Assembly: GCA_004431415.1 (NCBI GenBank) | Contig: QPMI01000551.1 | Span: 62,001 to 126,000, forward strand | Length of the DNA stretch: 64,000 nucleotides | Source of the DNA: Cyanophora paradoxa CCMP329 | Taxonomy: Eukaryota > Plantae > Glaucophyta | Direction: 5' to 3' | Shown: one piece after another, positions 15,238-56,265 of the stretch | Numbering within the stretch: the stretch's first letter is position 1 | Layout: every line of letters starts with the position of its first letter | Notes under the pieces: generated by a model | The model's input: the letters and a program-made list of their open reading frames with translations, nothing else | What the model was told of the DNA's origin: nothing | The model's database searches: none | Program-made: the position numbers and the translations under genes

Positions 15238-16305
15238 TCAAGTCTGCCTGCAGAATTTAACTTGAAAATAGGCTCTGGACCGGCCTGCCTCGATCTGCCT
15301 CGACTTGAAACCCCGGACCGGCACCTGCCTTGCCTTGCCTTTTTCTGCCTCGGCTGCCTGTGCTGTGCCGGGCGCATCGACCTCTATCTCGTCAATGTCC
15401 TCCCTATAGGGATCGAAATCAGTATCATCCTCTCTATCGATAAGGACATTGTGAAGAGTCACGCAGGTATCTACCAGCTTCACTACATTCTCGAGCTTAA
15501 GGGAGCCGCAGTGCTGAAGGGAACGGAACCGACCCTTAAGTGAACCGAAAGCCTGCTCTATAATCTGACGGAGAGAGCACAGAACCTCATTGTAGTAAAT
15601 CTGCTCGGCAGAAAGAACACCTACCCTACGGAAAGGGGTAAGAAGCCAGTTCTGGGGCCAAAACCCGCCGTCGGCTATGATAAAGAAAGGGACGGGCGAG
15701 ACGGGGAACCAGGCGGCGAAGTTCTGGATGAGGGACGTGTTCCTGAGGGGCCCCCAGTCGCTGTGCCGCCCCACCTCCCCCACATCCGTCCATCTGCTTA
15801 TACGGGTCAAACCGCGGGGCGGGGCGGGGCGGGCCGGGGCGGGGCGGGCCGGGGCGAGGCGGGCCCGGGCGGGGCGGGCCGGCGCGGCGCGGCCGCGACC
15901 GGGGGCGGGGCGGTGCGGGGGGCGGGCGCGCGGGGCGGGGCGGGGCGGGGGCGGGCGGGGCGGGGGCGGGCGGACGCACAAGAAGCGGCCGACGGAGTCG
16001 CAGATCGCTAGAAGAATCACCGAGTGGAAGCCCTTGTGGCAGTAGTAGGCCGACTCGTCAGTGCCCGGCGGCACGTTGATCGGGATGTGCGAGCCGTCCA
16101 GCGCCCCCACGACGTTCGGGAACCGCGCGAAGCCCCTTTCGACGCATTTCTGCGCGGGGCACGCGCGGCGGGTCAGCGGCAGCTGCAGGCGCGCGGGGCG
16201 CGCGGCGAAGGGCGAAGTCCTGAGCCCAACCTTGTTGAATCCTGCGGCGACGAGCGACTTAGCGTCCGTGTCGGCGGGCCACTTCTTATGCAGCGCGAGC
16301 TGCTC
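15238..16305 (-). CDS. PIF/Harbinger (HARBI1-like, DDE_Tnp_4) transposase/nuclease with spliceosomal introns; N-terminus not resolved
   Basis: FPNVVGALDGSHIPI, YYCHKGFHSVILLAICD, IIADGGF, LLTPF, RQIIEQAFGSLKGRFRSL and CVTLHNVLI are the canonical Harbinger motifs, with an intact D-D-E triad. A GT..AG C-rich intron lies at ~15796-15978. Confidence 0.9.
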   Translation of the reverse strand, partial: EQLALHKKWPADTDAKSLVAAGFNKVGLRTSPFAARPARLQLPLTRRACPAQKCVERGFARFPNVVGALDGSHIPINVPPGTDESAYYCHKGFHSVILLAICDSVGRFLCVRPPPPRPPPPRPAPRARPPHRPAPGRGRAAPARPARARLAPARPAPARPAPPRGLTRISRWTDVGEVGRHSDWGPLRNTSLIQNFAAWFPVSPVPFFIIADGGFWPQNWLLTPFRRVGVLSAEQIYYNEVLCSLRQIIEQAFGSLKGRFRSLQHCGSLKLENVVKLVDTCVTLHNVLIDREDDTDFDPYREDIDEIEVDAPGTAQAAEAEKGKARQVPVRGFKSRQIEAGRSRAYFQVKFCRQT

Positions 16306-47330: not shown

Positions 47331-50300
47331 TCATGTGCATGCTTGGAGCTCATGATCACTACAGTTCGAGTAACTTGTTTGTATGGTTGACAGAGCTCGA
47401 GTAACGAATTCAAGCTCTGGCCTTGGAGCCTTCACGCTTTTGAGCGCGCAAAGCGGTGGCCCTGTGGAAGCTCCCCACAGCGGTGGCCGCAAGGGCGACG
47501 GGCGCGGCGACTGTGATAGCGCCGATGGCGAGCGTGAAGCAGCGGGCCCCGCCACCCTCAACGTGCCTGCGATAGTGGCGGCGCGCGCTCTGAATCTGTG
47601 CACGCTCGAGGGGTACGGGTACCGGTGTACGTACCTCGCAGAGGTCTGGGGCAGCTCGCGGTCGCGGCCGGCGACGGCCTCGTCCAGACGCGCCAGAGTC
47701 TTGTCCAGCACGTCGGGCCATGTAAGGCTCGTGCCCCGGTTTTCCGAATTCTTCATGCACCCCAACACGCACGCTCAATCAGGTTTAAAGAATTCACGTT
47801 CGTATCAGCATGATCGGTATTATGATCAGCATTGTTTTTCGACGCACTGACCTCGAGTTTGAAAGAGAAGCGAAGTGCACGGTTCTCTTCGCCATTAGAG
47901 GACTCGCATGAGATGCACATGCGCAAACCGCTGCAGTCCGGATCCATGCGAAGCCACTGGCCGACCTGCTTGTTCAAACTCTCCATCGCCTTTGCGAGCA
48001 TGATGGGCACGACGAGCGACTCGCCCGACTGCTCCTTGTACGCAAACGCAATGACAATGCGCGCGCCACGACTCTGCAGCGCATTGGCCCGTTGCAAGAC
48101 GGCCTCCAGATCGGCCTCGCGAATTGTCGTCGGGAGGACCAAGACGGCGGCGGCGCCGGCGGGGACGTGTCCATCGATGGCGTCGAGAGAATCCTCTGCC
48201 CCGTTGGCCGTGACCTCCTCCAGTTGGGTGAGGCCGAACCGCACAGAGAGGCGCCGGCCGCCCTCCGGCCTCTTGTGCGAGCTGCGAACACGCAACTTCA
48301 GATTTTAGGGCATCCAATTGCAAGTTATTGCGGCGACAGGGCGCACTACAAATCTACGTTCTTTCTATTCTTGACGGCTGTCAGGAACGCCTCGCAGCTC
48401 TGTGGCGTCAATGGTACAGCGGGCCCAAAGACGGGAATCTTCTTGACGAGCTGCAGGGTCGCGACGTGCTACGTGTACGCGCAGCATTAAAGTGGCGTTT
48501 CAACGCTTCATCTGTCAGGCACACCTCAAGCCGATCGAACTCTGTCAAAATGACGAGGGTTATCGTTTCGTCTGCGCCAATGACATCTCCGAAGTCGATC
48601 TGACAGTCGAGGGTGGGCAGCTGTTGTTCGGTCCGGTGGCATGCGATTGGATTGCTCGCACGTGAAATGTGAGCATGTGCTCTGGCGCGGTGATATTTCC
48701 TTTCCACGCCAGCCCCTCTCTCTCTCCTTTTATCTTGTCCTCGTAACTGCCGCAGCGTGTATAGGATGTGAGTGTATATGTGGTGACACAATCACGGGCC
48801 ATGGCCACCATGCACGCACAATACGTGAACTGCAGTCGCGAGAAAGAGCCGTTCGCCGCGAATCGCGAAATCGATTATGCCGCCCGTATGCCGCGCGATA
48901 GCTCGAATGTCAGTGATCGAGGGCGGTGACGGCGCCACCAGTCCGTGTGACACCTCTGCAGCTGGCACCACGGGCAGGGGTCTGCTGGCACGCTTCGTCT
49001 CGCACTTTGTGATCCTACGCGACAATTGAGGATTAAACGGAATGCGCTCAATTCATCGAGGAATCGAAGAGGGACTAGAACTGCGCGAGCGGCGCACTGG
49101 CAGATAGACTCCAGGTACGACGACATTTTATGTTCCGAAACAGCCAACAGGTCCAAGGACGAGAAATTTGACTGCCCACAAGTCAAGATCTTTTTGCAAG
49201 GCGCAGCAATATAATAGCGCACTCGCACACTAGTCCCGTGGCGGCGATCCACGTCGACGACCACCACAGGCGAGTCGGATTGATATCGGCAGCGGGTCTC
49301 ACTGTAGCTGAACCAATTGAATGGCCATGACGGATTTGCGCACAGTTCTGGGCTCTTGATTACCTGCCAGGCTGAGGTCAGCAGGCCTACGTGCACGTGC
49401 ACGTTGCCGGGAGCTGCAGGCCGGGAGGGCGCACGAGAGTGGGGACGACGGGGGCGTAGCGCATCGGCAACAGGGGGAGCTTCGGCACGGGGTCATCCTC
49501 GCGTGCGAACGCATAGACGCGCTGCCGCGAGGGCCGGGGAGCTCCCTATTAGTATGATACACAGTGGCGCAAATTAAACTACAGGCGATCGCGAGCGTGG
49601 AGCGCACATCTTTCCACCCGTACCGACCGAAAGCGAGCTCCTGTGAGTCTGCAAAGAGCGGCTGGCCGAAGGTGACGCAGAGCGCCGTCTCCGCGACGCC
49701 CGACCAGGCTCGGACATCGGGATCGTCCGGCCCCTGCTCGCCCTCGAGGCGGGCCGCCTCCAGGAGGAGGCGGGCGAGGACGAGGCACGCCACCGCCCCG
49801 CCGAGCGAGTGCCCGCAGAGCACGAGCCGCTTGCCCTTCGAGTGCGCCGCATACACGATTGACTCCAGCTGAACCTTGCACGCCCGCTTCCAGAATCCCT
49901 GCATCGCACACTTAAGTGAGCCCGAGCATCTGGCAGCGGGCTTGCAGCTGGCACTGGCGAACAGCGAACCACGTGAACTTTGCCTAGGCCGGGAACGTCT
50001 GCCTGCACCATATTCGCGTCGACGCCTGCGTCCCGGAAACTGTCCGTCCCGCGGAAGGCGACATATAAGCGCTCCCTGTCCTCCGCCCTGCGCATGCACG
50101 GGACCGATTGAGCTTCGGAAAGCTCGACGTCGAGCTTGCGTGCGCAATGCAGTGTGGGACACGCGCCAGAGAGCATCCTGGAATACGTCGGGGGCCACTT
50201 TTGTGCTCCGCGTGCGCTGGATGCTGAGGACGTCCAGCTCGATCTTGTCCTCCTGAAAAAGATTTAAAAAGATGAGAAACGATTCGAAGAAGCCTTGAAG

Positions 50301-53300
50301 TCTTCAAGGGCAGAGTACGCGGATTGGCGTGCGGACCTGTCGAGCGAGCTCGAGCAGCCTCCGAAGGCATTCCTCCGCAGAGTTCTCGTAGCATGCCATG
50401 CAGAGGTGCGCTGATCGGATGAACATCGTCCTGGAGGTGTCTTCTTTGATTCGAAAGACTGGCGATTTGCCACCGTGGACCATGTTGCCCCTCAAGCAAG
50501 GAGCCGCGCCCGTTGCAATCTTGATGCCCCCCAGAGCGTTTCCGTAGATGTCGTTGTCCTCGACCGTGCCTCGCCCGCTCTCGTGCACGTAGATGCCGGC
50601 ATCCTTGCCGTCGTGGACCTTGTTGCGACGCACGACGGGGTCCGCGCCGGTAGTGATTTCGATGCCCACCAGTGCGTTCCCGTAGATGTCGTTGTCCTCG
50701 ACCGTGCCCCGCCCGCTCTCGTGCACGAAGATGCCGAAAAACTTGCCGTCGTGGACCTTGTTGCGACGCACGACGGGGTCCGCACCGGTCGCGATTGCGA
50801 TGCCCACCAGTGCGTTCCCGTAGATGTCGTTGTCCTCGACCGTGCCTCGCCCGCTCTCGTGCACGAAGATGCCGGAACACTTGCCGTCGTGGACCTTGTT
50901 GCGACGCACGACGGGGTCCGCGCCGGTAGTGATTTCGATGCCCCCCAGAGCGTTCCCGTAGATGTCGTTGTCCTCAACTGTGCCTCGCCCGCTCTCACAC
51001 ACGAGGATGCCGACGTCGCAATCGTCACACTTGCCGTCGTGGACCTTGTTGCGACGCACGACGGGGTCCGCACCGGTCGCGATTGCGATGCCCACCAGTG
51101 CGTTCCCATAGATGTCGTTGTCCTCGACTGTGCCCCGCCCGCTCTCGTGCACGAAGATGCCGAAACACTTGCCGTCGTGGACCTTGTTGCGACGCACGAC
51201 GGGGTCCGCGCCGGTAGTGATTTCGATGCCCGCCAGTGCGTTGCCGTAGATGTCGTTGTCCTCGACCGTGCCCTGTCCGCTCTCGTGCGCGACGATGCCG
51301 CCCTGCTTGCCGTCGTAGACCTTGTTGCGACGCACGACGGGGTCTGCGCCGGTAGTGATTTTGATGCCTGCCAGTGCGTTGCCGCAGATGTCGTTGTCCT
51401 CGACCGTGCCTCGCCCGCTCTCGTGCACGACGATGCCGGCAATCTTGTTGTCGTGGACCTTGTTGCCACGCACGACGGGGTCCGCGCCGGTCTGGACCGC
51501 GATGCCCGCCAGTGCATTGCTGTAAATGTCGTTGTCCTCGACTGTGCCTCGCCCGCTCTCAAGCACGAAGATGCCGGCACTCTTGTTGTCGTGGACCTTG
51601 TTGCCGCGAACTGCGGGGTCCGCGCCGGTTGACATCTGGATGCCCGCCAGTGCGTTGCCGTAGATGTCGTTGTCCTCGATGTTGCCTCGCCCGCTCTCAA
51701 GCACGAAGATGCCGGAACTCTTGCCGTCGAAGACCTTGTTGCCACGCACGACGGGGTCCGCGCCGGTTGACACCTGGATGCCCGCTAGTGCGTTGCCGTA
51801 GATGTCGTTGTCCTCAACCGTGCCACGCCCGTTCTCGCACACGTAGATGCCGGCGTTTTCGCCATCGCGGATTTTGTTGCCGCGCACGACGGGGTCCGCG
51901 CCTGTATCAATCGCGATACCTGATCGCGTGTTTCCAAACACATCGTTGTCCTCCGCGACACCCTTGGCCGACGCGTGGAAGGAGATGCCCCTCTCGCCAC
52001 AGTCATGCACCGCATTTCCTGCAGAGGGATCGGATAATTTATAATTAGCGGAGGGATGAATGAAATAATTTGCGAGTCGTGCTCACCGCGCAACGTCGCG
52101 GACGTCCCCTCGCCACTGACGATAATACCACTGTAGAGAGTGCAAGACACGTCGCAGCCCTCCAAGACCGCCCGGCTCCCCTCCGTGATTCGCACCGCCG
52201 GTATGGCACCGGTGGGCTCGCCATCGGGGACGATCGTGGAATCAGAACCGCGAATCGTGATCCCCCTCACGCTTGGTGCTGCCGGCCCCTTGAAGCGCAG
52301 CGTCTCGCCCTGGTTGTACTCAAGGATGGCCTCCCGCGATCCGACGATGTGCACTTCCTTCTCCAGCAATATCGCCTCCTTGTACCTGCAAGATCGCCTC
52401 CTTGTACCTGCAAGAGCGATCGCAAATTGGCCCGACGAGTTTATCTGTCACTGGAGGAGGGTGCATATGCATGCGCACCGGCCGGGGAAGAGGCGGATGG
52501 TCTGTCCCGGGGTGGCCCGCGCGACAGCGGCCGCGATGCTCTCTCCAGGTCGCACCCACAGTTGCGAATCCCCGCCAGCAATGTTCGATGCCTGCATAAA
52601 TACGCGCAGAGTCTCGATTAGGTACGCTGTACACGTAATTAGGCGCGATTACATGTGTGCTAGATTAGGCGCGCTGCACGCTTTTCCTTTATAGCATAGT
52701 ATAACTTGCTGGTATAGCTAGTTACAGCTACAGCTGTATGCATGGGCGCCAACCTCGAGCTCGTCGTCATGATAAGGTGCGCCGTGTGGCCCGTTGTCGA
52801 CGGACGGAGCCGATATCGATGCTTCTGCAGCTGGGCCAGCCCCGGCGCACTCACAAGAAGATGGGGGGGGCGCCCAGGACGGCGGCTGCACTGTAGCGAT
52901 CGTCTGCATGCGCAGCTCAACGATATCAGCTTTTATCGCGAGAGAAGCCAATGTATCTATTTCTAAATCTCTCGTATACGTAGCGGCGACATTGACGCAC
53001 CTTCGGCTTGAGCTTATGATCATGTGCAGATATAGACGAGAGCCGCTCCGTCCACCCCTCTAGATCTGTCACAGGCTTGGGCTCTGTTTCGAGCGACTTG
53101 CGTCCATTATCGCGCCCCGATATTCTGCGCATTCGCACCATGTAAGCAGGCAAAGGCATAGGGCGGAGGAAACGGCCGAGGCAAATCGCGACGTCAAGAC
53201 GGCGTCGACATTTAGGGCGGCCGAGTGCGGCCGCGGGCTGCGAAATTCAAGCGGCTCACTTGCGGATCTTGCCCAAATACGAGGACATAGCGCGGCCCAG

Positions 53301-55011
53301 CACAAGACGCGGGTCAAATGACGAAACATTGCGATCACGATCGATCTGAACCTGCCCATGCCGCAGTGCATCACGTTTGTGAAATCTGCACAGCGCAGGG
53401 ATCGAGAGCGCACAGGGGCACGCACTGGCGCGCATACGCCAGCGCTAGCCATGTGGCCAGGACGGTGATCTTCATCGACGACGCCCTCGAGCTCGGACGA
53501 GCCGGACCTGCGCGAGCGATCCCAGTGTTAACGTTGACTTAGGCGGTGGGTCACGAGGATCCGGAATATTAATGGTTTGAATATTAATAGCAAAGCTGCG
53601 AACGGTTCCGAGCACTTGATCACCTGCGCATGCCGTGCTACAGTCAGCATGCCCACGTGCACGCTGCAAGGCTTACGCAGCGGCGCACGAAGGTGGGGGC
53701 TGCGTCAAAGGGAGCGAAGTACGGTGTCAGGACTTGAGCCACAGTGTCGTCCTCTGTCATGAAAGCAATAAGGTGCTGCCGCTCGGCAAGTCAGCTGGGC
53801 CGCACGCGTACGAGACCAGATCAAGATATGCATGCAGTGACACACCTCGTCCCATGAATACCGGCCAGCAATCGGCCCGTCCGACTTGACGAGCTGCAGC
53901 TGGCCAAAGGTGACGCAGAGCGCCGTCTCGGCGACGCCCGACCAGGCTCGGACGTCGGGATCGTCCGGCCCCTGCTCGCCCTCGAGGCGGGCCGCCTCCA
54001 GGAGGAGGCGGGCGAGGACGAGGCACGCCACCGCCCCGCCGAGCGAGTGCCCGCAGAGCACGAGCCGCTTGCCCTTCGAGTGCGCCGCGTCAATGATCGG
54101 CCGAAGCCGAACTCTGTCTGCCCAAACGCACAAGTCCTGTACGTACACGAAGAGAGCGGATCAGAGAGGCACGCTACAATTTGCACATGTACAAGCCGCA
54201 CGCGGCCCGGCGGACCTCGTTGACTTGGCCTATGCCGGGGAAGTCGCGCGATGCACTGGAAAGGCTGTACATGTCGAGCTCGAGGCGTCCGTGGCACTGA
54301 TCATGATGCATCACACGCAACGCGACGAACAAGCGCTCCTTGTCCTCCGCCCTGCGCCGAGTATACGTAGTTTAAGCACAGTGTGCACTCGCAACGCTAG
54401 CGTGAGACATGTACACATGTACACACCAGAGAGCCGCCTGAAACCAGCTGCGATGGGGTTCGTAGCAACTTATGTGCCGGATGCGGAGGCCTTCGAGCTC
54501 GTCCGCGTCGGTCTCCGCCTGCAAGGCGACCAGGTGCATGCACATGCGCAGGTTAGACATGCATATGTGCCGCCAGCAGCAGATCTAGATTAATATTGGC
54601 ACACGGACCGCTTGCTTGAGCAGGGCTTGAATAGCCTCGCGATCGGCAGAGCTCGAGGCCTCGTAGCTTGCGGCGGCGAGGTGCGCCGAGCGGATGTACA
54701 TCTTGGGGTCGCTTTTAATTCGAAGAAGCTGGAGATGCAGTGACGATGCGCAAGGTAGAAGCTGGTCGCGATCGGTGACAGATCGCGACGGAACGTTAAC
54801 GATGCGGCTGCCCTGATGAAGCCGATCGTGATCATGAGGCGGCTGCGGTGCTGGTGGACGTCGCGACACTGCAGCCTGATCAGGAGCATCCGATGCCTGC
54901 CGCGCAAATCATGTGTGGAGGCCTGCATGGCGCGCAGGACCCTGACTCAGTGACCTTCTCAACCGCGGCCGCGGCCGGCAGCAACCCGCCGACACCTGCG
55001 CCATCGTCCAT
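47331..55011 (-). CDS. Multi-exon locus: degenerate class-3 lipase + FBXO11-like parallel beta-helix (PbH1) array + intact class-3 lipase + unknown C-terminal region (single transcript inferred)
   Basis: Lipase B (~49100-50430): LYVAFRGTDS, GKVHV|GFW, LVLCGHSLGGAVA, CVTFGQP, EDDPVPKLP, EHKMSSY. Lipase A (~53300-54730) has the same exon pattern and GHSLGG. The beta-helix cap is WVRPGESIAAAVARATPGQTIRLFPGR|YKEAILL, followed by 11 x 46-aa GIxVxESGRGTVEDNDIYGNALxGIxIxTGADPVVRxNKVHDGK repeats that run in frame into lipase B. Confidence 0.78.
50475..52010 (-). repeat. Coding tandem array, 138-bp unit x 11 (beta-helix repeats)
   Basis: Read directly from ORF 50304-52010. One unit carries a 4-aa insertion (KCDDCDVG). 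Confidence 0.95.
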
Positions 55012-56200
55012 GTCCACGGCCGACGCCTGCAGACGACAGTCAAGTTGTGCCGAGCCGGCGCGGGCGCGGCGATGCCGGCGCTGGCGCCGTGCCGGCCCAC
55101 GAGCCGCGGCCCACGGCCCCATGAGCATGGCCAGGCGCAGGCCTAGATGTGGCGGCGTGCAACCCGCACCATGATCTGGCAAGTCTCCTCGAGCTCTCGG
55201 CCGCGGATCACTGCATCGGAGGGCGCAGCCTTGACGTCGCATGCCTGCGGTAATTATATAGGCTCGATCTTAGTTCGCCAGCTGCAGACGATTGGGGGCG
55301 CACGCGCGGCGCCGACCTCATGACCATCATCATCAGATACGCCAGATGACGAGGCCGAGAACGCCAGGCCAGTGCCAGTGCAGTCAAGCTCGCTCCCGGT
55401 CGACGTCGGTCGCGACAGCCTGAGTGCGTCCGATGCCTGCCGGGCCGCAGCGCATATCCGGCGGGCTCAGATCCTGCATTCGCAGTCGGCAATGCGGGCG
55501 CCGACCTCATCCGCTGACGATCCGAGCCCGACGTCGACGTTGACGGACTCCTTAAAATTAAAAGCGGCACGTCAACATCAACGCGTACGGGCGACGCGGG
55601 GCACGGAGTGCTGATAAATCTCGCATGCGCACCTTCGTCTGCAGCTGAACCTGGTCGTTTGATGCACATTCCGGCCTTGAGCTCGCCACCTGCGCATGCG
55701 CATATATGCATACGGGCTCTGTTAGCATTTAATTTGACAATTGCAGCTGCACGCCGCGGGTGCGCCGCGCGGCCGCCCTATACGCGGCAGCTGTGTGCTG
55801 CAGCTGCGCGGCCGCCCTATACGCAGCAGCTGCGTGCGGCAGCTGCGTGCTCACCGCGCGGGTCATGGTTGCCTTTACCCAGGCCTCCGGAGGAGCCGGC
55901 GCCAAAGGAGCCCAGAGGAGGTCGATGTCCGTGTCGGACGCGTACGGAGAGCTGGCGCTGCGGCTGGCCATGGTGCCGGTCGTGGCGCTAATCATGAAGC
56001 TCGATCCCGCGGCGCCGGCCGCGGCCGGGCGCGGAGTTGACGTCGACGTCGGAACGCAGCTGACTGGTCGTCGGCCGGTACGACCTAGACCGCTGAGCCT
56101 ACAACCGCTGAGCCTACAATCGTCGGCCGCGCGCGGCCGCGGCGGCCGCGGTCGTCGTCGGCGCGCGGGCGCGCGGTCGTACGCGTCGCCAGCTGCAGAT

Positions 56201-56265
56201 CTGCTGCCGCAGTGCTGCTGCTGCTGCTGCTGCCGCAGTGCTGCTGCTGCTGCTGCTGCTGCTGC
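56201..56265. repeat. Interrupted (CTG)n microsatellite
   Basis: Two CTG runs separated by CCGCAGT. Confidence 0.9.

Follow-up and report, generated by a model that had tools for sequence, protein, structure and literature searches.

A beta-helix of the FBXO11 type lies between two class-3 lipase modules on one contig of Cyanophora paradoxa, which raises the question of whether these parts make up a single protein and, if so, what such a protein would do. The alga is a glaucophyte and so belongs to one of the three lineages with primary plastids, a lineage whose cell-autonomous defense is, to our knowledge, almost entirely uncharted. A reading of the DNA letters by themselves (here, the sequence-only reading) had taken the locus for a candidate sensor-effector system and had asked whether its parts share one mRNA. 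We examined that proposal in the window, the whole 64,000-nucleotide stretch of DNA that was analyzed.

One gene and one transcript

Positions 55971 to 47413 of the minus strand hold a single gene of 34 exons, tig00021105_g18254, encoding 1955 aa. The exons of its database model, P0121, were placed on the window by exact-match mapping, and the parts of the product follow one another in the order low-complexity head, lipase_3 module A, FBXO11-type beta-helix, lipase_3 module B, and an orphan tail (~390 aa) with a hydrophobic end (Table 1). Residues 1 to 162 contain neither a signal peptide nor a domain, the linker between module A and the helix is also domain-free, and no NTPase, death-fold, or other signaling domain was found among the Pfam matches of P0121. 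Elsewhere in the window, the long open reading frames (ORFs) had no Pfam match except for one transposase.

Spliced RNA contigs from three runs (X4, X5, and X6, all from one study) contain both the A-to-helix and the helix-to-B junctions; on one side the last exon of A continues into the exons of the linker and the helix, and on the other the 1682-nt exon continues into those of B, which bears out a shared mRNA. The introns at RNA-backed joints are all GT-AG or GC-AG (the intron at 50088-50166 in module B is GC-AG), and none of these joints occurs in a DNA run. Among coding exons 1 to 6, RNA backs the last junction only (intron 54897-54954), where a loose end at 54898 matches 54957-54986. The four inner borders of A between 54136 and 53351 were deduced from contig-length arithmetic, GT-AG, and frame, and they agree with P0121. 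For the 3' third of the gene the basis is annotation alone, and RNA mapping reached down to 48950. The gene begins upstream of the span first proposed (47331-55011), which left out the first five coding exons (55971-55170).

Table 1. Features of the helix-lipase gene, in order of transcription (all on the minus strand)
Feature	Position	Residues or detail	Basis
Coding exons 1-6	54955..55971	Start codon 55971; residues 1-162, low-complexity	Exact P0121 mapping
Lipase_3 module A (predicted pseudo-lipase)	53260..54896	Residues ~219-525	Pfam Lipase_3, RNA joints
Module A exons	54896-54609, 54518-54427, 54351-54216, 54136-53846, 53775-53689, 53623-53604, 53507-53426, 53351-53260		
Gene-conversion tract in A	53900..54088	B partner 49662-49850	
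In-frame TAA	53528..53530	In the A stretch matching B's 141-nt exon	Sequence, exon solution, agreement with P0121
Two linker exons	53124-53001, 52903-52754	Residues 526-616	RNA joints, translation
Beta-helix N-cap exon	52479..52591	Close likeness to the P0006 N-cap	RNA joints, translation
22-nt tandem repeat	52366..52415	2.3 copies; spans the splice acceptor	TRF, sequence
First beta-helix coils exon	52087..52407	In-frame form 52385-52087	
Premature stop of the observed RNA form	52320..52322	ORF1, 682 aa	
1682-nt exon	50337..52018		RNA joints at both ends, Pfam PF13229, unit analysis
Rest of lipase_3 module B	49098..50252	Residues ~1298-1563	RNA joints, frame walk, Pfam
Module B exons	50252-50167, 50087-49970, 49898-49608, 49521-49435, 49363-49223, 49171-49098		
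Seven C-terminal exons, orphan region	47413..49014	Residues 1564-1955	Annotation mapping only
Hydrophobic segment, putative tail anchor	47476..47532	Residues 1916-1934; Kyte-Doolittle mean 2.12	

An intact lipase and a degenerate one

Module B carries the motifs FRGT, VHVGF, GHSLG, DDPVP, and HKMSSY. Its triad is complete, consisting of Ser1396 (GHSLG), Asp1472 (DDPVP), and His1552 (HKMSSY), with FRGT as the oxyanion motif, and in an alignment of relatives the columns of the Ser and the Asp hardly vary. The Lipase_3 profile (PF01764) scores 76.3 bits on P0121 against a cutoff of 22, with its best stretch at residues 1334 to 1479, and the closest PDB sequences to B are fungal MAG/DAG lipases (5xk2, E 2.8e-11). 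Judged by its catalytic residues, module B is an intact class-3 lipase.

Module A, 46% identical to B across 340 aa, retains Ser365 and Asp441 together with GHSLG and has DDTVA, ALRV in the place of FRGT (Val302-Met303 for Gly-Thr), and VNE|DL in the place of VHxGF (Asn333 for His). The columns of Val302 and Asn333 are Gly and His in at least 90% of relatives. Its His motif reads GRAMSSY, in which Arg514 is aligned with His1552 of B, leaving no catalytic His; A thus has neither a full catalytic triad nor the oxyanion motif. In an alignment-based AF2 model of A, the core has pLDDT values of 85 to 97, and Rhizomucor miehei lipase is the closest structure in the PDB, followed by EDS1. We therefore predict that module A is catalytically dead and keeps the lipase fold. 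Module A also includes a micro-exon of 20 nt (53623-53604) and an in-frame TAA, which is spliced out because it lies within an extra intron (53508-53603), so that the ORF stays open.

The sequence-only reading had described much of this correctly: Lipase_3 matches ORFs on either side of the helix (49299-50198 and 53705-54148), every motif that it listed for A and B was found as given, and the absence of a clear HxMxxY from A corresponds to the Arg in GRAMSSY. It had also pointed to the GHSLG kept by A, and here its account needs to be divided. Sixty-three residues around this motif are identical in A and B, with 3 synonymous differences over the 189 nt, whereas the flanks of this tract, within one and the same exon, show 51 mismatches in 102 nt. 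On this pattern, the GHSLG of A is explained by a recent 189-nt gene conversion with B. The motif is present, as claimed, and because it lies inside the shared tract, it is no evidence of selection.

A beta-helix of near-identical units

The array had been likened to FBXO11, and the Beta_helix profile (PF13229) matches it with an E value of 7.6e-162 (ORF 50304-52010, minus strand). RNA also gives exactly the long exon that had been proposed, within which the N-terminal helix of lipase B is in the frame of the array. Ten two-coil units of 46 aa occupy positions 51902 to 50511 (repeat finders count 10 copies at a period of 138 nt); unit 7 is longer by an insert of 4 aa, and an eleventh unit is degenerate. 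The units are 78 to 97% identical at the nucleotide level, and the upper end of that range marks a recent expansion.

Amino acid change among the units is concentrated in 8 of the 46 columns, namely 12, 16, 17, 20, 22, 40, 43, and 45. The scaffold columns have a pN/pS of 0.23, which indicates purifying selection, and the variable columns, which were picked for being variable, have a pN/pS of 1.03, about 1 and not above it. These columns give no indication of positive selection, and since they were chosen as variable, diversifying selection is not proven. The idea of a variable beta-helix holds insofar as change is focused in a few columns and is not supported insofar as it implied positive selection.

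A splice acceptor inside a 22-nt duplication

Each of the three RNA runs yields contigs in which the exon with the first helix coils opens at 52407, inside the 22-nt duplication, and the frame is shifted; the in-frame AG of the annotation is 22 nt downstream, at 52385. The X4, X5, and X6 contigs run gap-free from 52405 to 52086, 52097, and 52275, respectively. ORF1 of this form contains the head, lipase A, the linker, and the helix N-cap, and the frame break sits within the helix domain, between the N-cap and the remaining coils. An in-frame 52385 junction is not among the junctions listed, beside which two further joints exist. The duplication is also found in a 2012 DNA run.

When acceptor 52385 is used, the ORF is open through all exons and is identical to P0121. 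Because the contigs of every RNA run break the frame at this point, the full-length protein may be scarce in this strain or not made at all. The full protein would then come from a minor splice form only, and the duplication would be either an off-switch or the mark of a copy that has been newly crippled in this strain.

An orphan tail with a putative membrane anchor

The full ORF ends at a stop codon at 47410-47412. For its C-terminal tail, the predicted order is a beta-sandwich, an alpha/beta part, and a long helix; the single-sequence AF2 model (396 residues) is unreliable, with a pLDDT of 38.8. The tail had no match in PDB sequences, the ESM Atlas, or Pfam at an E value of ≤1, and a homologue search that covered proteins of ~210 to 670 aa returned no relatives. 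The lipase-GTPase fusions P0179, P0180, and P0187 suggested that the tail might be a degenerate GTPase; we rejected this idea after BLAST found no similarity to them beyond the lipase.

Residues 1916 to 1934 form the sole strong hydrophobic stretch, ending 21 residues short of the C terminus in a protein that has no signal peptide, and a paralogue, P0123, has a similar hydrophobic segment that is also C-terminal. The 1955-aa product of the in-frame acceptor is probably cytosolic and tail-anchored.

Relatives and known systems

A second paralogue, P0006, has a TIR_2 head and a helix 58% identical to that of P0121. In bacterial and metagenomic relatives, a TIR, caspase, kinase, or TPR head (placed by Pfam) is N-terminal to the same helix of 46-aa units, and P0121 can be aligned with P0006, P0007, and P0001 in both the N-cap and the units. 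Pairings of this array with other effectors, which the sequence-only reading had recommended looking for among paralogues, occur in Cyanophora (TIR) and in bacteria (TIR, caspase, and kinase). P0121 has the N-cap, the 46-aa two-coil units, and an N-terminal enzyme domain, here lipase A, that define this group with interchangeable heads. It resembles P0001, P0002, P0013, P0004, and P0006 in N-cap and unit (43 to 58% identity) and in having a single enzyme or effector head before the helix and no NTPase. It differs from them in its head, a dead lipase, and in the live lipase, orphan tail, and anchor that follow the helix, with lipase B in place of the usual helix C-cap.

No other protein with the dead-lipase/helix/live-lipase architecture was found in database searches, and nothing relevant to it, or to TIR with an FBXO11-like helix, turned up in the literature searched. 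The claim that the locus is unlike any described family accordingly held among the proteins and literature searched. The combination is new in this sense, and it is reminiscent of immune sensors built as a single piece. In the two neighborhoods examined, the bacterial TIR-helix genes had no clear defense island.

The array is ~40% identical to animal FBXO11 (DRE-1) over 80 to 90% of the 1682-nt exon, and the PF13229 and NosD profiles match both. The helix of FBXO11 is a protein-substrate-binding domain. However, P0121 shares only the helix of the FBXO11 set (F-box, CASH beta-helix, and UBR-type zinc finger): it lacks the F-box (PF00646/PF12937) and the UBR zinc finger (PF02207), both of which the animal matches have. 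Its helix is placed between lipase modules, its units are far more alike, and no 46-aa GADP-spaced units were found in FBXO11.

Fungal class-3 mono-/diacylglycerol and triacylglycerol lipases are small and secreted. They (5xk2, 5ch8, 1tia, and Rhizomucor miehei lipase) share with the locus the Lipase_3 domain, Ser-Asp-His, FRGT, and the DPVP Asp strand, and they rank first in sequence for B and in fold for A; here, in contrast, the modules are embedded in a cytosolic multidomain protein of 1955 aa, and one of the two is inactive. EDS1, PAD4, and SAG101 are lipase-like plant immune regulators, some of them noncatalytic, that work in pairs. The locus has Lipase_3-fold modules like theirs, with fold matches and weak sequence matches (EDS1, 4.4e-06; PAD4, 7.8e-06) that are weaker than those to fungal lipases. 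The likeness is confined to the lipase fold: the EP domain that completes this family is in none of the matches of P0121, and residues 1560 to 1955 were negative at an E value of ≤1. We use the comparison as an analogy only.

Fungal NLRs are alike in combining near-identical repeat units that have a few variable columns with a lipid-hydrolase-type effector. Their N-terminal effectors include alpha/beta-hydrolase, patatin, TIR, and kinase domains (PMC9815663). In P0121, however, the array is built of beta-helix coils rather than WD40, ANK, or TPR repeats, the lipase is Lipase_3 rather than SesB-like or patatin, and the live effector is C-terminal to the array. The central NACHT, NB-ARC, or other STAND NTPase that marks an NLR is missing, there being no P-loop NTPase among its Pfam matches.

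Discussion

We propose that the locus is one gene with one transcript, that it encodes a 1955-aa tail-anchored helix-lipase protein of a family with swappable heads, and that this protein is a sensor-effector in defense or cell death; we give this reading as a whole a probability of about 0.4. Because the same helix occurs elsewhere with TIR, caspase, and kinase heads, a sensor-effector role is plausible by analogy. The eight variable columns of the helix would make up the face that binds a ligand, whether a protein or something else, binding would release or localize lipase B, and lipase B would hydrolyze lipids of the membrane that bears the anchor, with a defense or cell-death response as the outcome. 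Module A may be a noncatalytic partner or decoy. On the role of regulator that the sequence-only reading had given to A, a complex prediction for the two modules (B 1255-1575, A 215-605) scored 0.01, which counts neither for nor against contact. The analysis establishes the architecture, the splicing, the catalytic residues, the paralogy, and the gene conversion, and from there we infer ligand binding, control of the lipase, the lipids that it attacks, and an immune function, if any.

An alternative hypothesis, which we consider rather unlikely, is that the protein is a membrane lipid-remodeling enzyme, a tail-anchored mono-/diacylglycerol-type lipase for which the helix is a docking site or scaffold and the dead copy is left over from tandem duplication. 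The kinship of B with fungal MAG/DAG lipases fits this account, as do P0123, a plain lipase that ends in a hydrophobic segment, the nearest long relatives, which are lipase-GTPase fusions with no immune signature, the lack of an NTPase or death-type domain, and a pN/pS that is never above 1. It accounts poorly for a fusion found in no other organism searched, for the recent expansion of the units, and for the other heads on the same helix, and an out-of-frame main RNA form would be unexpected for a housekeeping gene. That RNA form, with its frame-breaking acceptor in every run and its duplication already present in 2012, speaks instead for a gene in decay, that is, a transcribed chimera from local duplication whose full protein has been lost in this strain through a fresh loss-of-function duplication. 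The dead module A and its ancestral in-frame stop point the same way; yet the remaining 33 exons give an unbroken 1955-codon ORF, the scaffold columns are under purifying selection, the catalytic residues of B are intact, the stop in A is excised by a dedicated intron, and a usable AG is present 22 nt downstream. We judge decay, too, to be unlikely.

It is very improbable that lipase A and helix-lipase B are two genes joined only by read-through transcription. In the observed RNA form, the ORF of A does stop at 52322, which leaves the helix in a frame of its own, but five consecutive spliced junctions connect the parts with no unspliced gap, and the frames all agree when the second AG is used. 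In addition, the translated helix frame has no Met in the linker between A and the array, and the break falls inside the helix domain, past the N-cap, not between modules.

A wider version of the sensor-effector reading is that Cyanophora and many bacteria have NTPase-free one-piece immune receptors, in which an FBXO11-type helix is the variable sensor and TIR, MLKL-like, caspase, or lipase domains are the executioners. To these the locus would add an EDS1-PAD4-like pair of a live and a dead lipase and a duplicated splice site that holds the killer in check as long as the downstream acceptor goes unused. Taken together, these propositions strike us as speculative and improbable.

The locus is a clean example of how gene conversion can maintain, in a pseudoenzyme, a motif that looks catalytic, and of how a 22-nt duplication at a splice junction can silence a large gene at the RNA level. 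If the sensor-effector reading is true, repeat sensors whose TIR, kinase, caspase, and lipase modules can be exchanged, common to bacteria and this glaucophyte, would have met independently the problem for which NLRs are the known solution, and the locus would be a second case, beside EDS1/PAD4, of live and dead lipase folds paired in a defense-like setting.

Gene structure and transcript

The window is eukaryotic DNA, rich in GC, and its minus-strand gene tig00021105_g18254 encodes two class 3 lipase modules (A and B) flanking a right-handed beta-helix array, followed by a C-terminal tail; this architecture and its single transcript are solid. Using the GHSLG exon of lipase B as a HMMER query, we found a 1,955-aa protein with two matching stretches, the EukProt model tig00021105_g18254.t1 of Cyanophora paradoxa, which maps exactly onto the window and matches all RNA junctions except one. 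Another isoform carries 4 additional aa. Four lipase A borders obtained from contig-length arithmetic, GT-AG dinucleotides, and frame coincide with the model.

None of the three runs from one study (X4, X5, and X6) is recorded as RNA, and their status was deduced from splicing. Their contigs skip at least 15 stretches that, after shifting within ambiguous letters, are minus-strand GT-AG introns, except for one GC-AG intron. A DNA run from 2012 (X1) is continuous across these stretches and contains none of the X4 to X6 joints; thus, X4 to X6 are RNA. An X5 contig (1,146 nt) and one X6 contig join the big exon to a series of exons that reaches lipase A, and further contigs link its other end with pieces of lipase B. 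A contig loose end at 54898 matches 54957-54986, which adds one upstream intron. Short-read assemblies are broken by the array and by the 190-nt tract common to A and B, where continuity is that of uninterrupted exons.

The RNA joints place the big exon exactly where the sequence-only reading had put it, and the array does run into lipase B in a single frame within that exon, as it had proposed; the frame stays open through all six of the next exons. The motifs that it had named are present in a three-frame reading. In lipase A, the counterpart of B's 141-nt exon holds an in-frame TAA (53530-53528), which an extra intron removes, leaving a 20-nt micro-exon.

Features of tig00021105_g18254 and its surroundings (window positions)
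Feature	Position	Strand	Remarks
Gene model tig00021105_g18254.t1	55971-47413	-	34 exons
Big exon	52018-50337	-	array and start of lipase B
Exons joined to big exon by X5 and X6 contigs	52405-52086, 52590-52477, 52903-52753, 53124-53001, 53349/53351-53260	-	last is lipase A His-motif exon
Pieces linked by further contigs	50571-50336 with 50251-50166, 50086-49969, 49897-49774	-	lipase B
GC-AG intron in lipase B	50088-50166	-	backed by RNA contigs of three runs
Lipase A counterpart intron	54352-54426	-	GT-AG
Isoform difference, 12 nt (4 aa, VRAP)	53414-53426	-	alternative donors of exon starting 53507
Annotated in-array intron, 51 nt (17 aa)	50754-50804	-	public gene model; GT start, AG end, in frame
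Right-handed beta-helix PF13229 (Pfam)	50304-52010	-	568-aa ORF; E = 7.6e-162
ORFs with class 3 lipase matches (Pfam)	49299-50198, 53705-54148	-	either side of helix ORF
138-nt period (repeat finders)	50523-51906		ten copies
228-nt direct repeat (repeat finders)	49658-49885, 53896-54123		92%
39-nt tandem repeat	55767-55847		2.1 copies; inside first intron of gene
CTG/CAG microsatellite	56201-56265		22 copies; immediately upstream of start codon
DDE_Tnp_4 (Harbinger/PIF-type) transposase domain	15238-16110	-	position of ORF; E = 1.5e-23

Helix units

The array consists of ten complete 46-aa units of two coils apiece, and a single unit has 4 extra aa inserted. The units are 78 to 97% identical in nucleotides (units 6, 8, and 9 at 95 to 97%). 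Within this protein the units resemble each other (0.77) somewhat more than they resemble the units of paralogues (0.63 to 0.70). Amino acid variation is concentrated in columns 12, 16, 17, 20, 22, 40, 43, and 45, which, judging from the periodicity, would be the loop preceding each Gly-Ile strand and alternate residues of that strand, on one face of the helix. The pN/pS ratio is 1.03 in these eight columns and 0.23 in the others; because the eight were picked for their variability, the former value is no proof of positive selection. The pattern shows a scaffold under constraint that has free positions.

Lipase modules

Lipase B retains Ser1396, Asp1472, and His1552 as well as FRGT and VHVGF. 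Among solved structures, it is best matched by fungal mono- and diacylglycerol lipases (5xk2, E = 2.8e-11); EDS1 and PAD4 rank below these at ~1e-05. Lipase A is 46% identical to B across 340 aa. In A, Arg514 stands where B has its His, the Gly-Thr of FRGT is replaced by Val-Met, and the His of VHxGF is replaced by Asn; the altered FRGT and VHxGF columns are at least 90% conserved among relatives. A structure predicted for A from an alignment of 22 sequences is confident in its core (pLDDT, 85 to 97; pTM, 0.68); its first fold match is Rhizomucor miehei lipase, with EDS1 further down the ranking. Given these substitutions, the modeled core, and the fold matches, A is predicted to be a folded pseudo-lipase.

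A block of 189 nt (63 residues) differs between A and B at only 3 positions, all synonymous, while the remainder of its exon has 51 differences in 102 nt and no alignment is possible in the flanking introns. The block is a recent gene conversion tract, and the GHSLG of A is no sign of constraint.

Frame break at the helix acceptor

The acceptor of exon 52407/52385-52087 sits within a 22-nt tandem repeat (2.3 copies) that is also present in the DNA run. Contigs of all three RNA runs use the first AG and continue without a gap, so that an extra 22 nt is retained. In this form the ORF from the start codon has 682 aa and stops at 52322-52320, directly after the helix N-cap, with at least 14 exon junctions remaining downstream; with the second AG, chosen by the annotation, it is open all along. 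The main RNA form, in the strain and samples available, cannot yield the helix or lipase B. No in-frame splice form was seen among the 15 joints listed from the three RNA runs. Since two more joints exist and assembled contigs retain the commoner path, such a form may exist.

Relatives and possible roles

Residues 1564 to 1955 have no detectable relatives, and a single-sequence structure model of this tail is unreliable. The only strong hydrophobic segment of the protein lies at 1916-1934, 21 residues before the C terminus, and there is no signal peptide, which together suggest a tail-anchored cytosolic protein.

The closest long relatives of lipase B are lipase-GTPase fusions (P0179, P0180, and P0187). 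That family, of ~1,100 aa, combines an N-terminal class 3 lipase with a C-terminal MMR_HSR1/dynamin-like GTPase and has one member from the stramenopile Pinguiococcus. Cyanophora encodes at least two further lipases of B's subfamily, a 217-aa fragment with 68% identity to B's GHSLG exon (P0122, tig00000411_g530) and a protein of 592 aa that likewise has a hydrophobic segment at its C terminus (P0123, tig00021374_g21128). No second protein with Lipase_3 and Beta_helix was found among the helix matches, the long proteins with this lipase, or 30 of the closest lipase relatives.

The big exon is best matched by metagenomic and bacterial proteins and by two paralogues from Cyanophora; animal FBXO11 (~40% identity) comes next. 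In the metagenomic, bacterial, and paralogous proteins, Pfam places TIR, caspase, kinase, or TPR domains N-terminal to the same helix. One of the paralogues, P0006, combines a TIR_2 head with an N-cap that is almost the same as the one here. Two bacterial TIR-helix genes were examined, and both are single genes. Macro-domain, SIR2, and PT-HINT genes lie less than 8 kb from one of them, a Streptomyces TIR-beta-helix gene (L002:8001-9944); these surroundings, suggestive only, may mark an NAD-related conflict region.

That lipase A and the helix with lipase B are two separate genes is very improbable: contigs join them, and the stretch from A to the array has no Met in the proper helix frame, which means that the part downstream is no gene of its own. 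A gene in decay, a reading with the frame-broken main RNA form in its favor and the open frame of the annotated form against it, seems unlikely to us. We are similarly doubtful of a plain lipid enzyme. The sequence-only reading had proposed a non-NLR receptor in which the beta-helix is a sensor, lipase B an effector, and the degenerate lipase A a regulator. We hold such a defense-type role tentatively, at a probability of about 0.4; the pattern of the repeats and the paralogy with helices that carry TIR, caspase, or kinase heads lend support to a sensor-effector arrangement.
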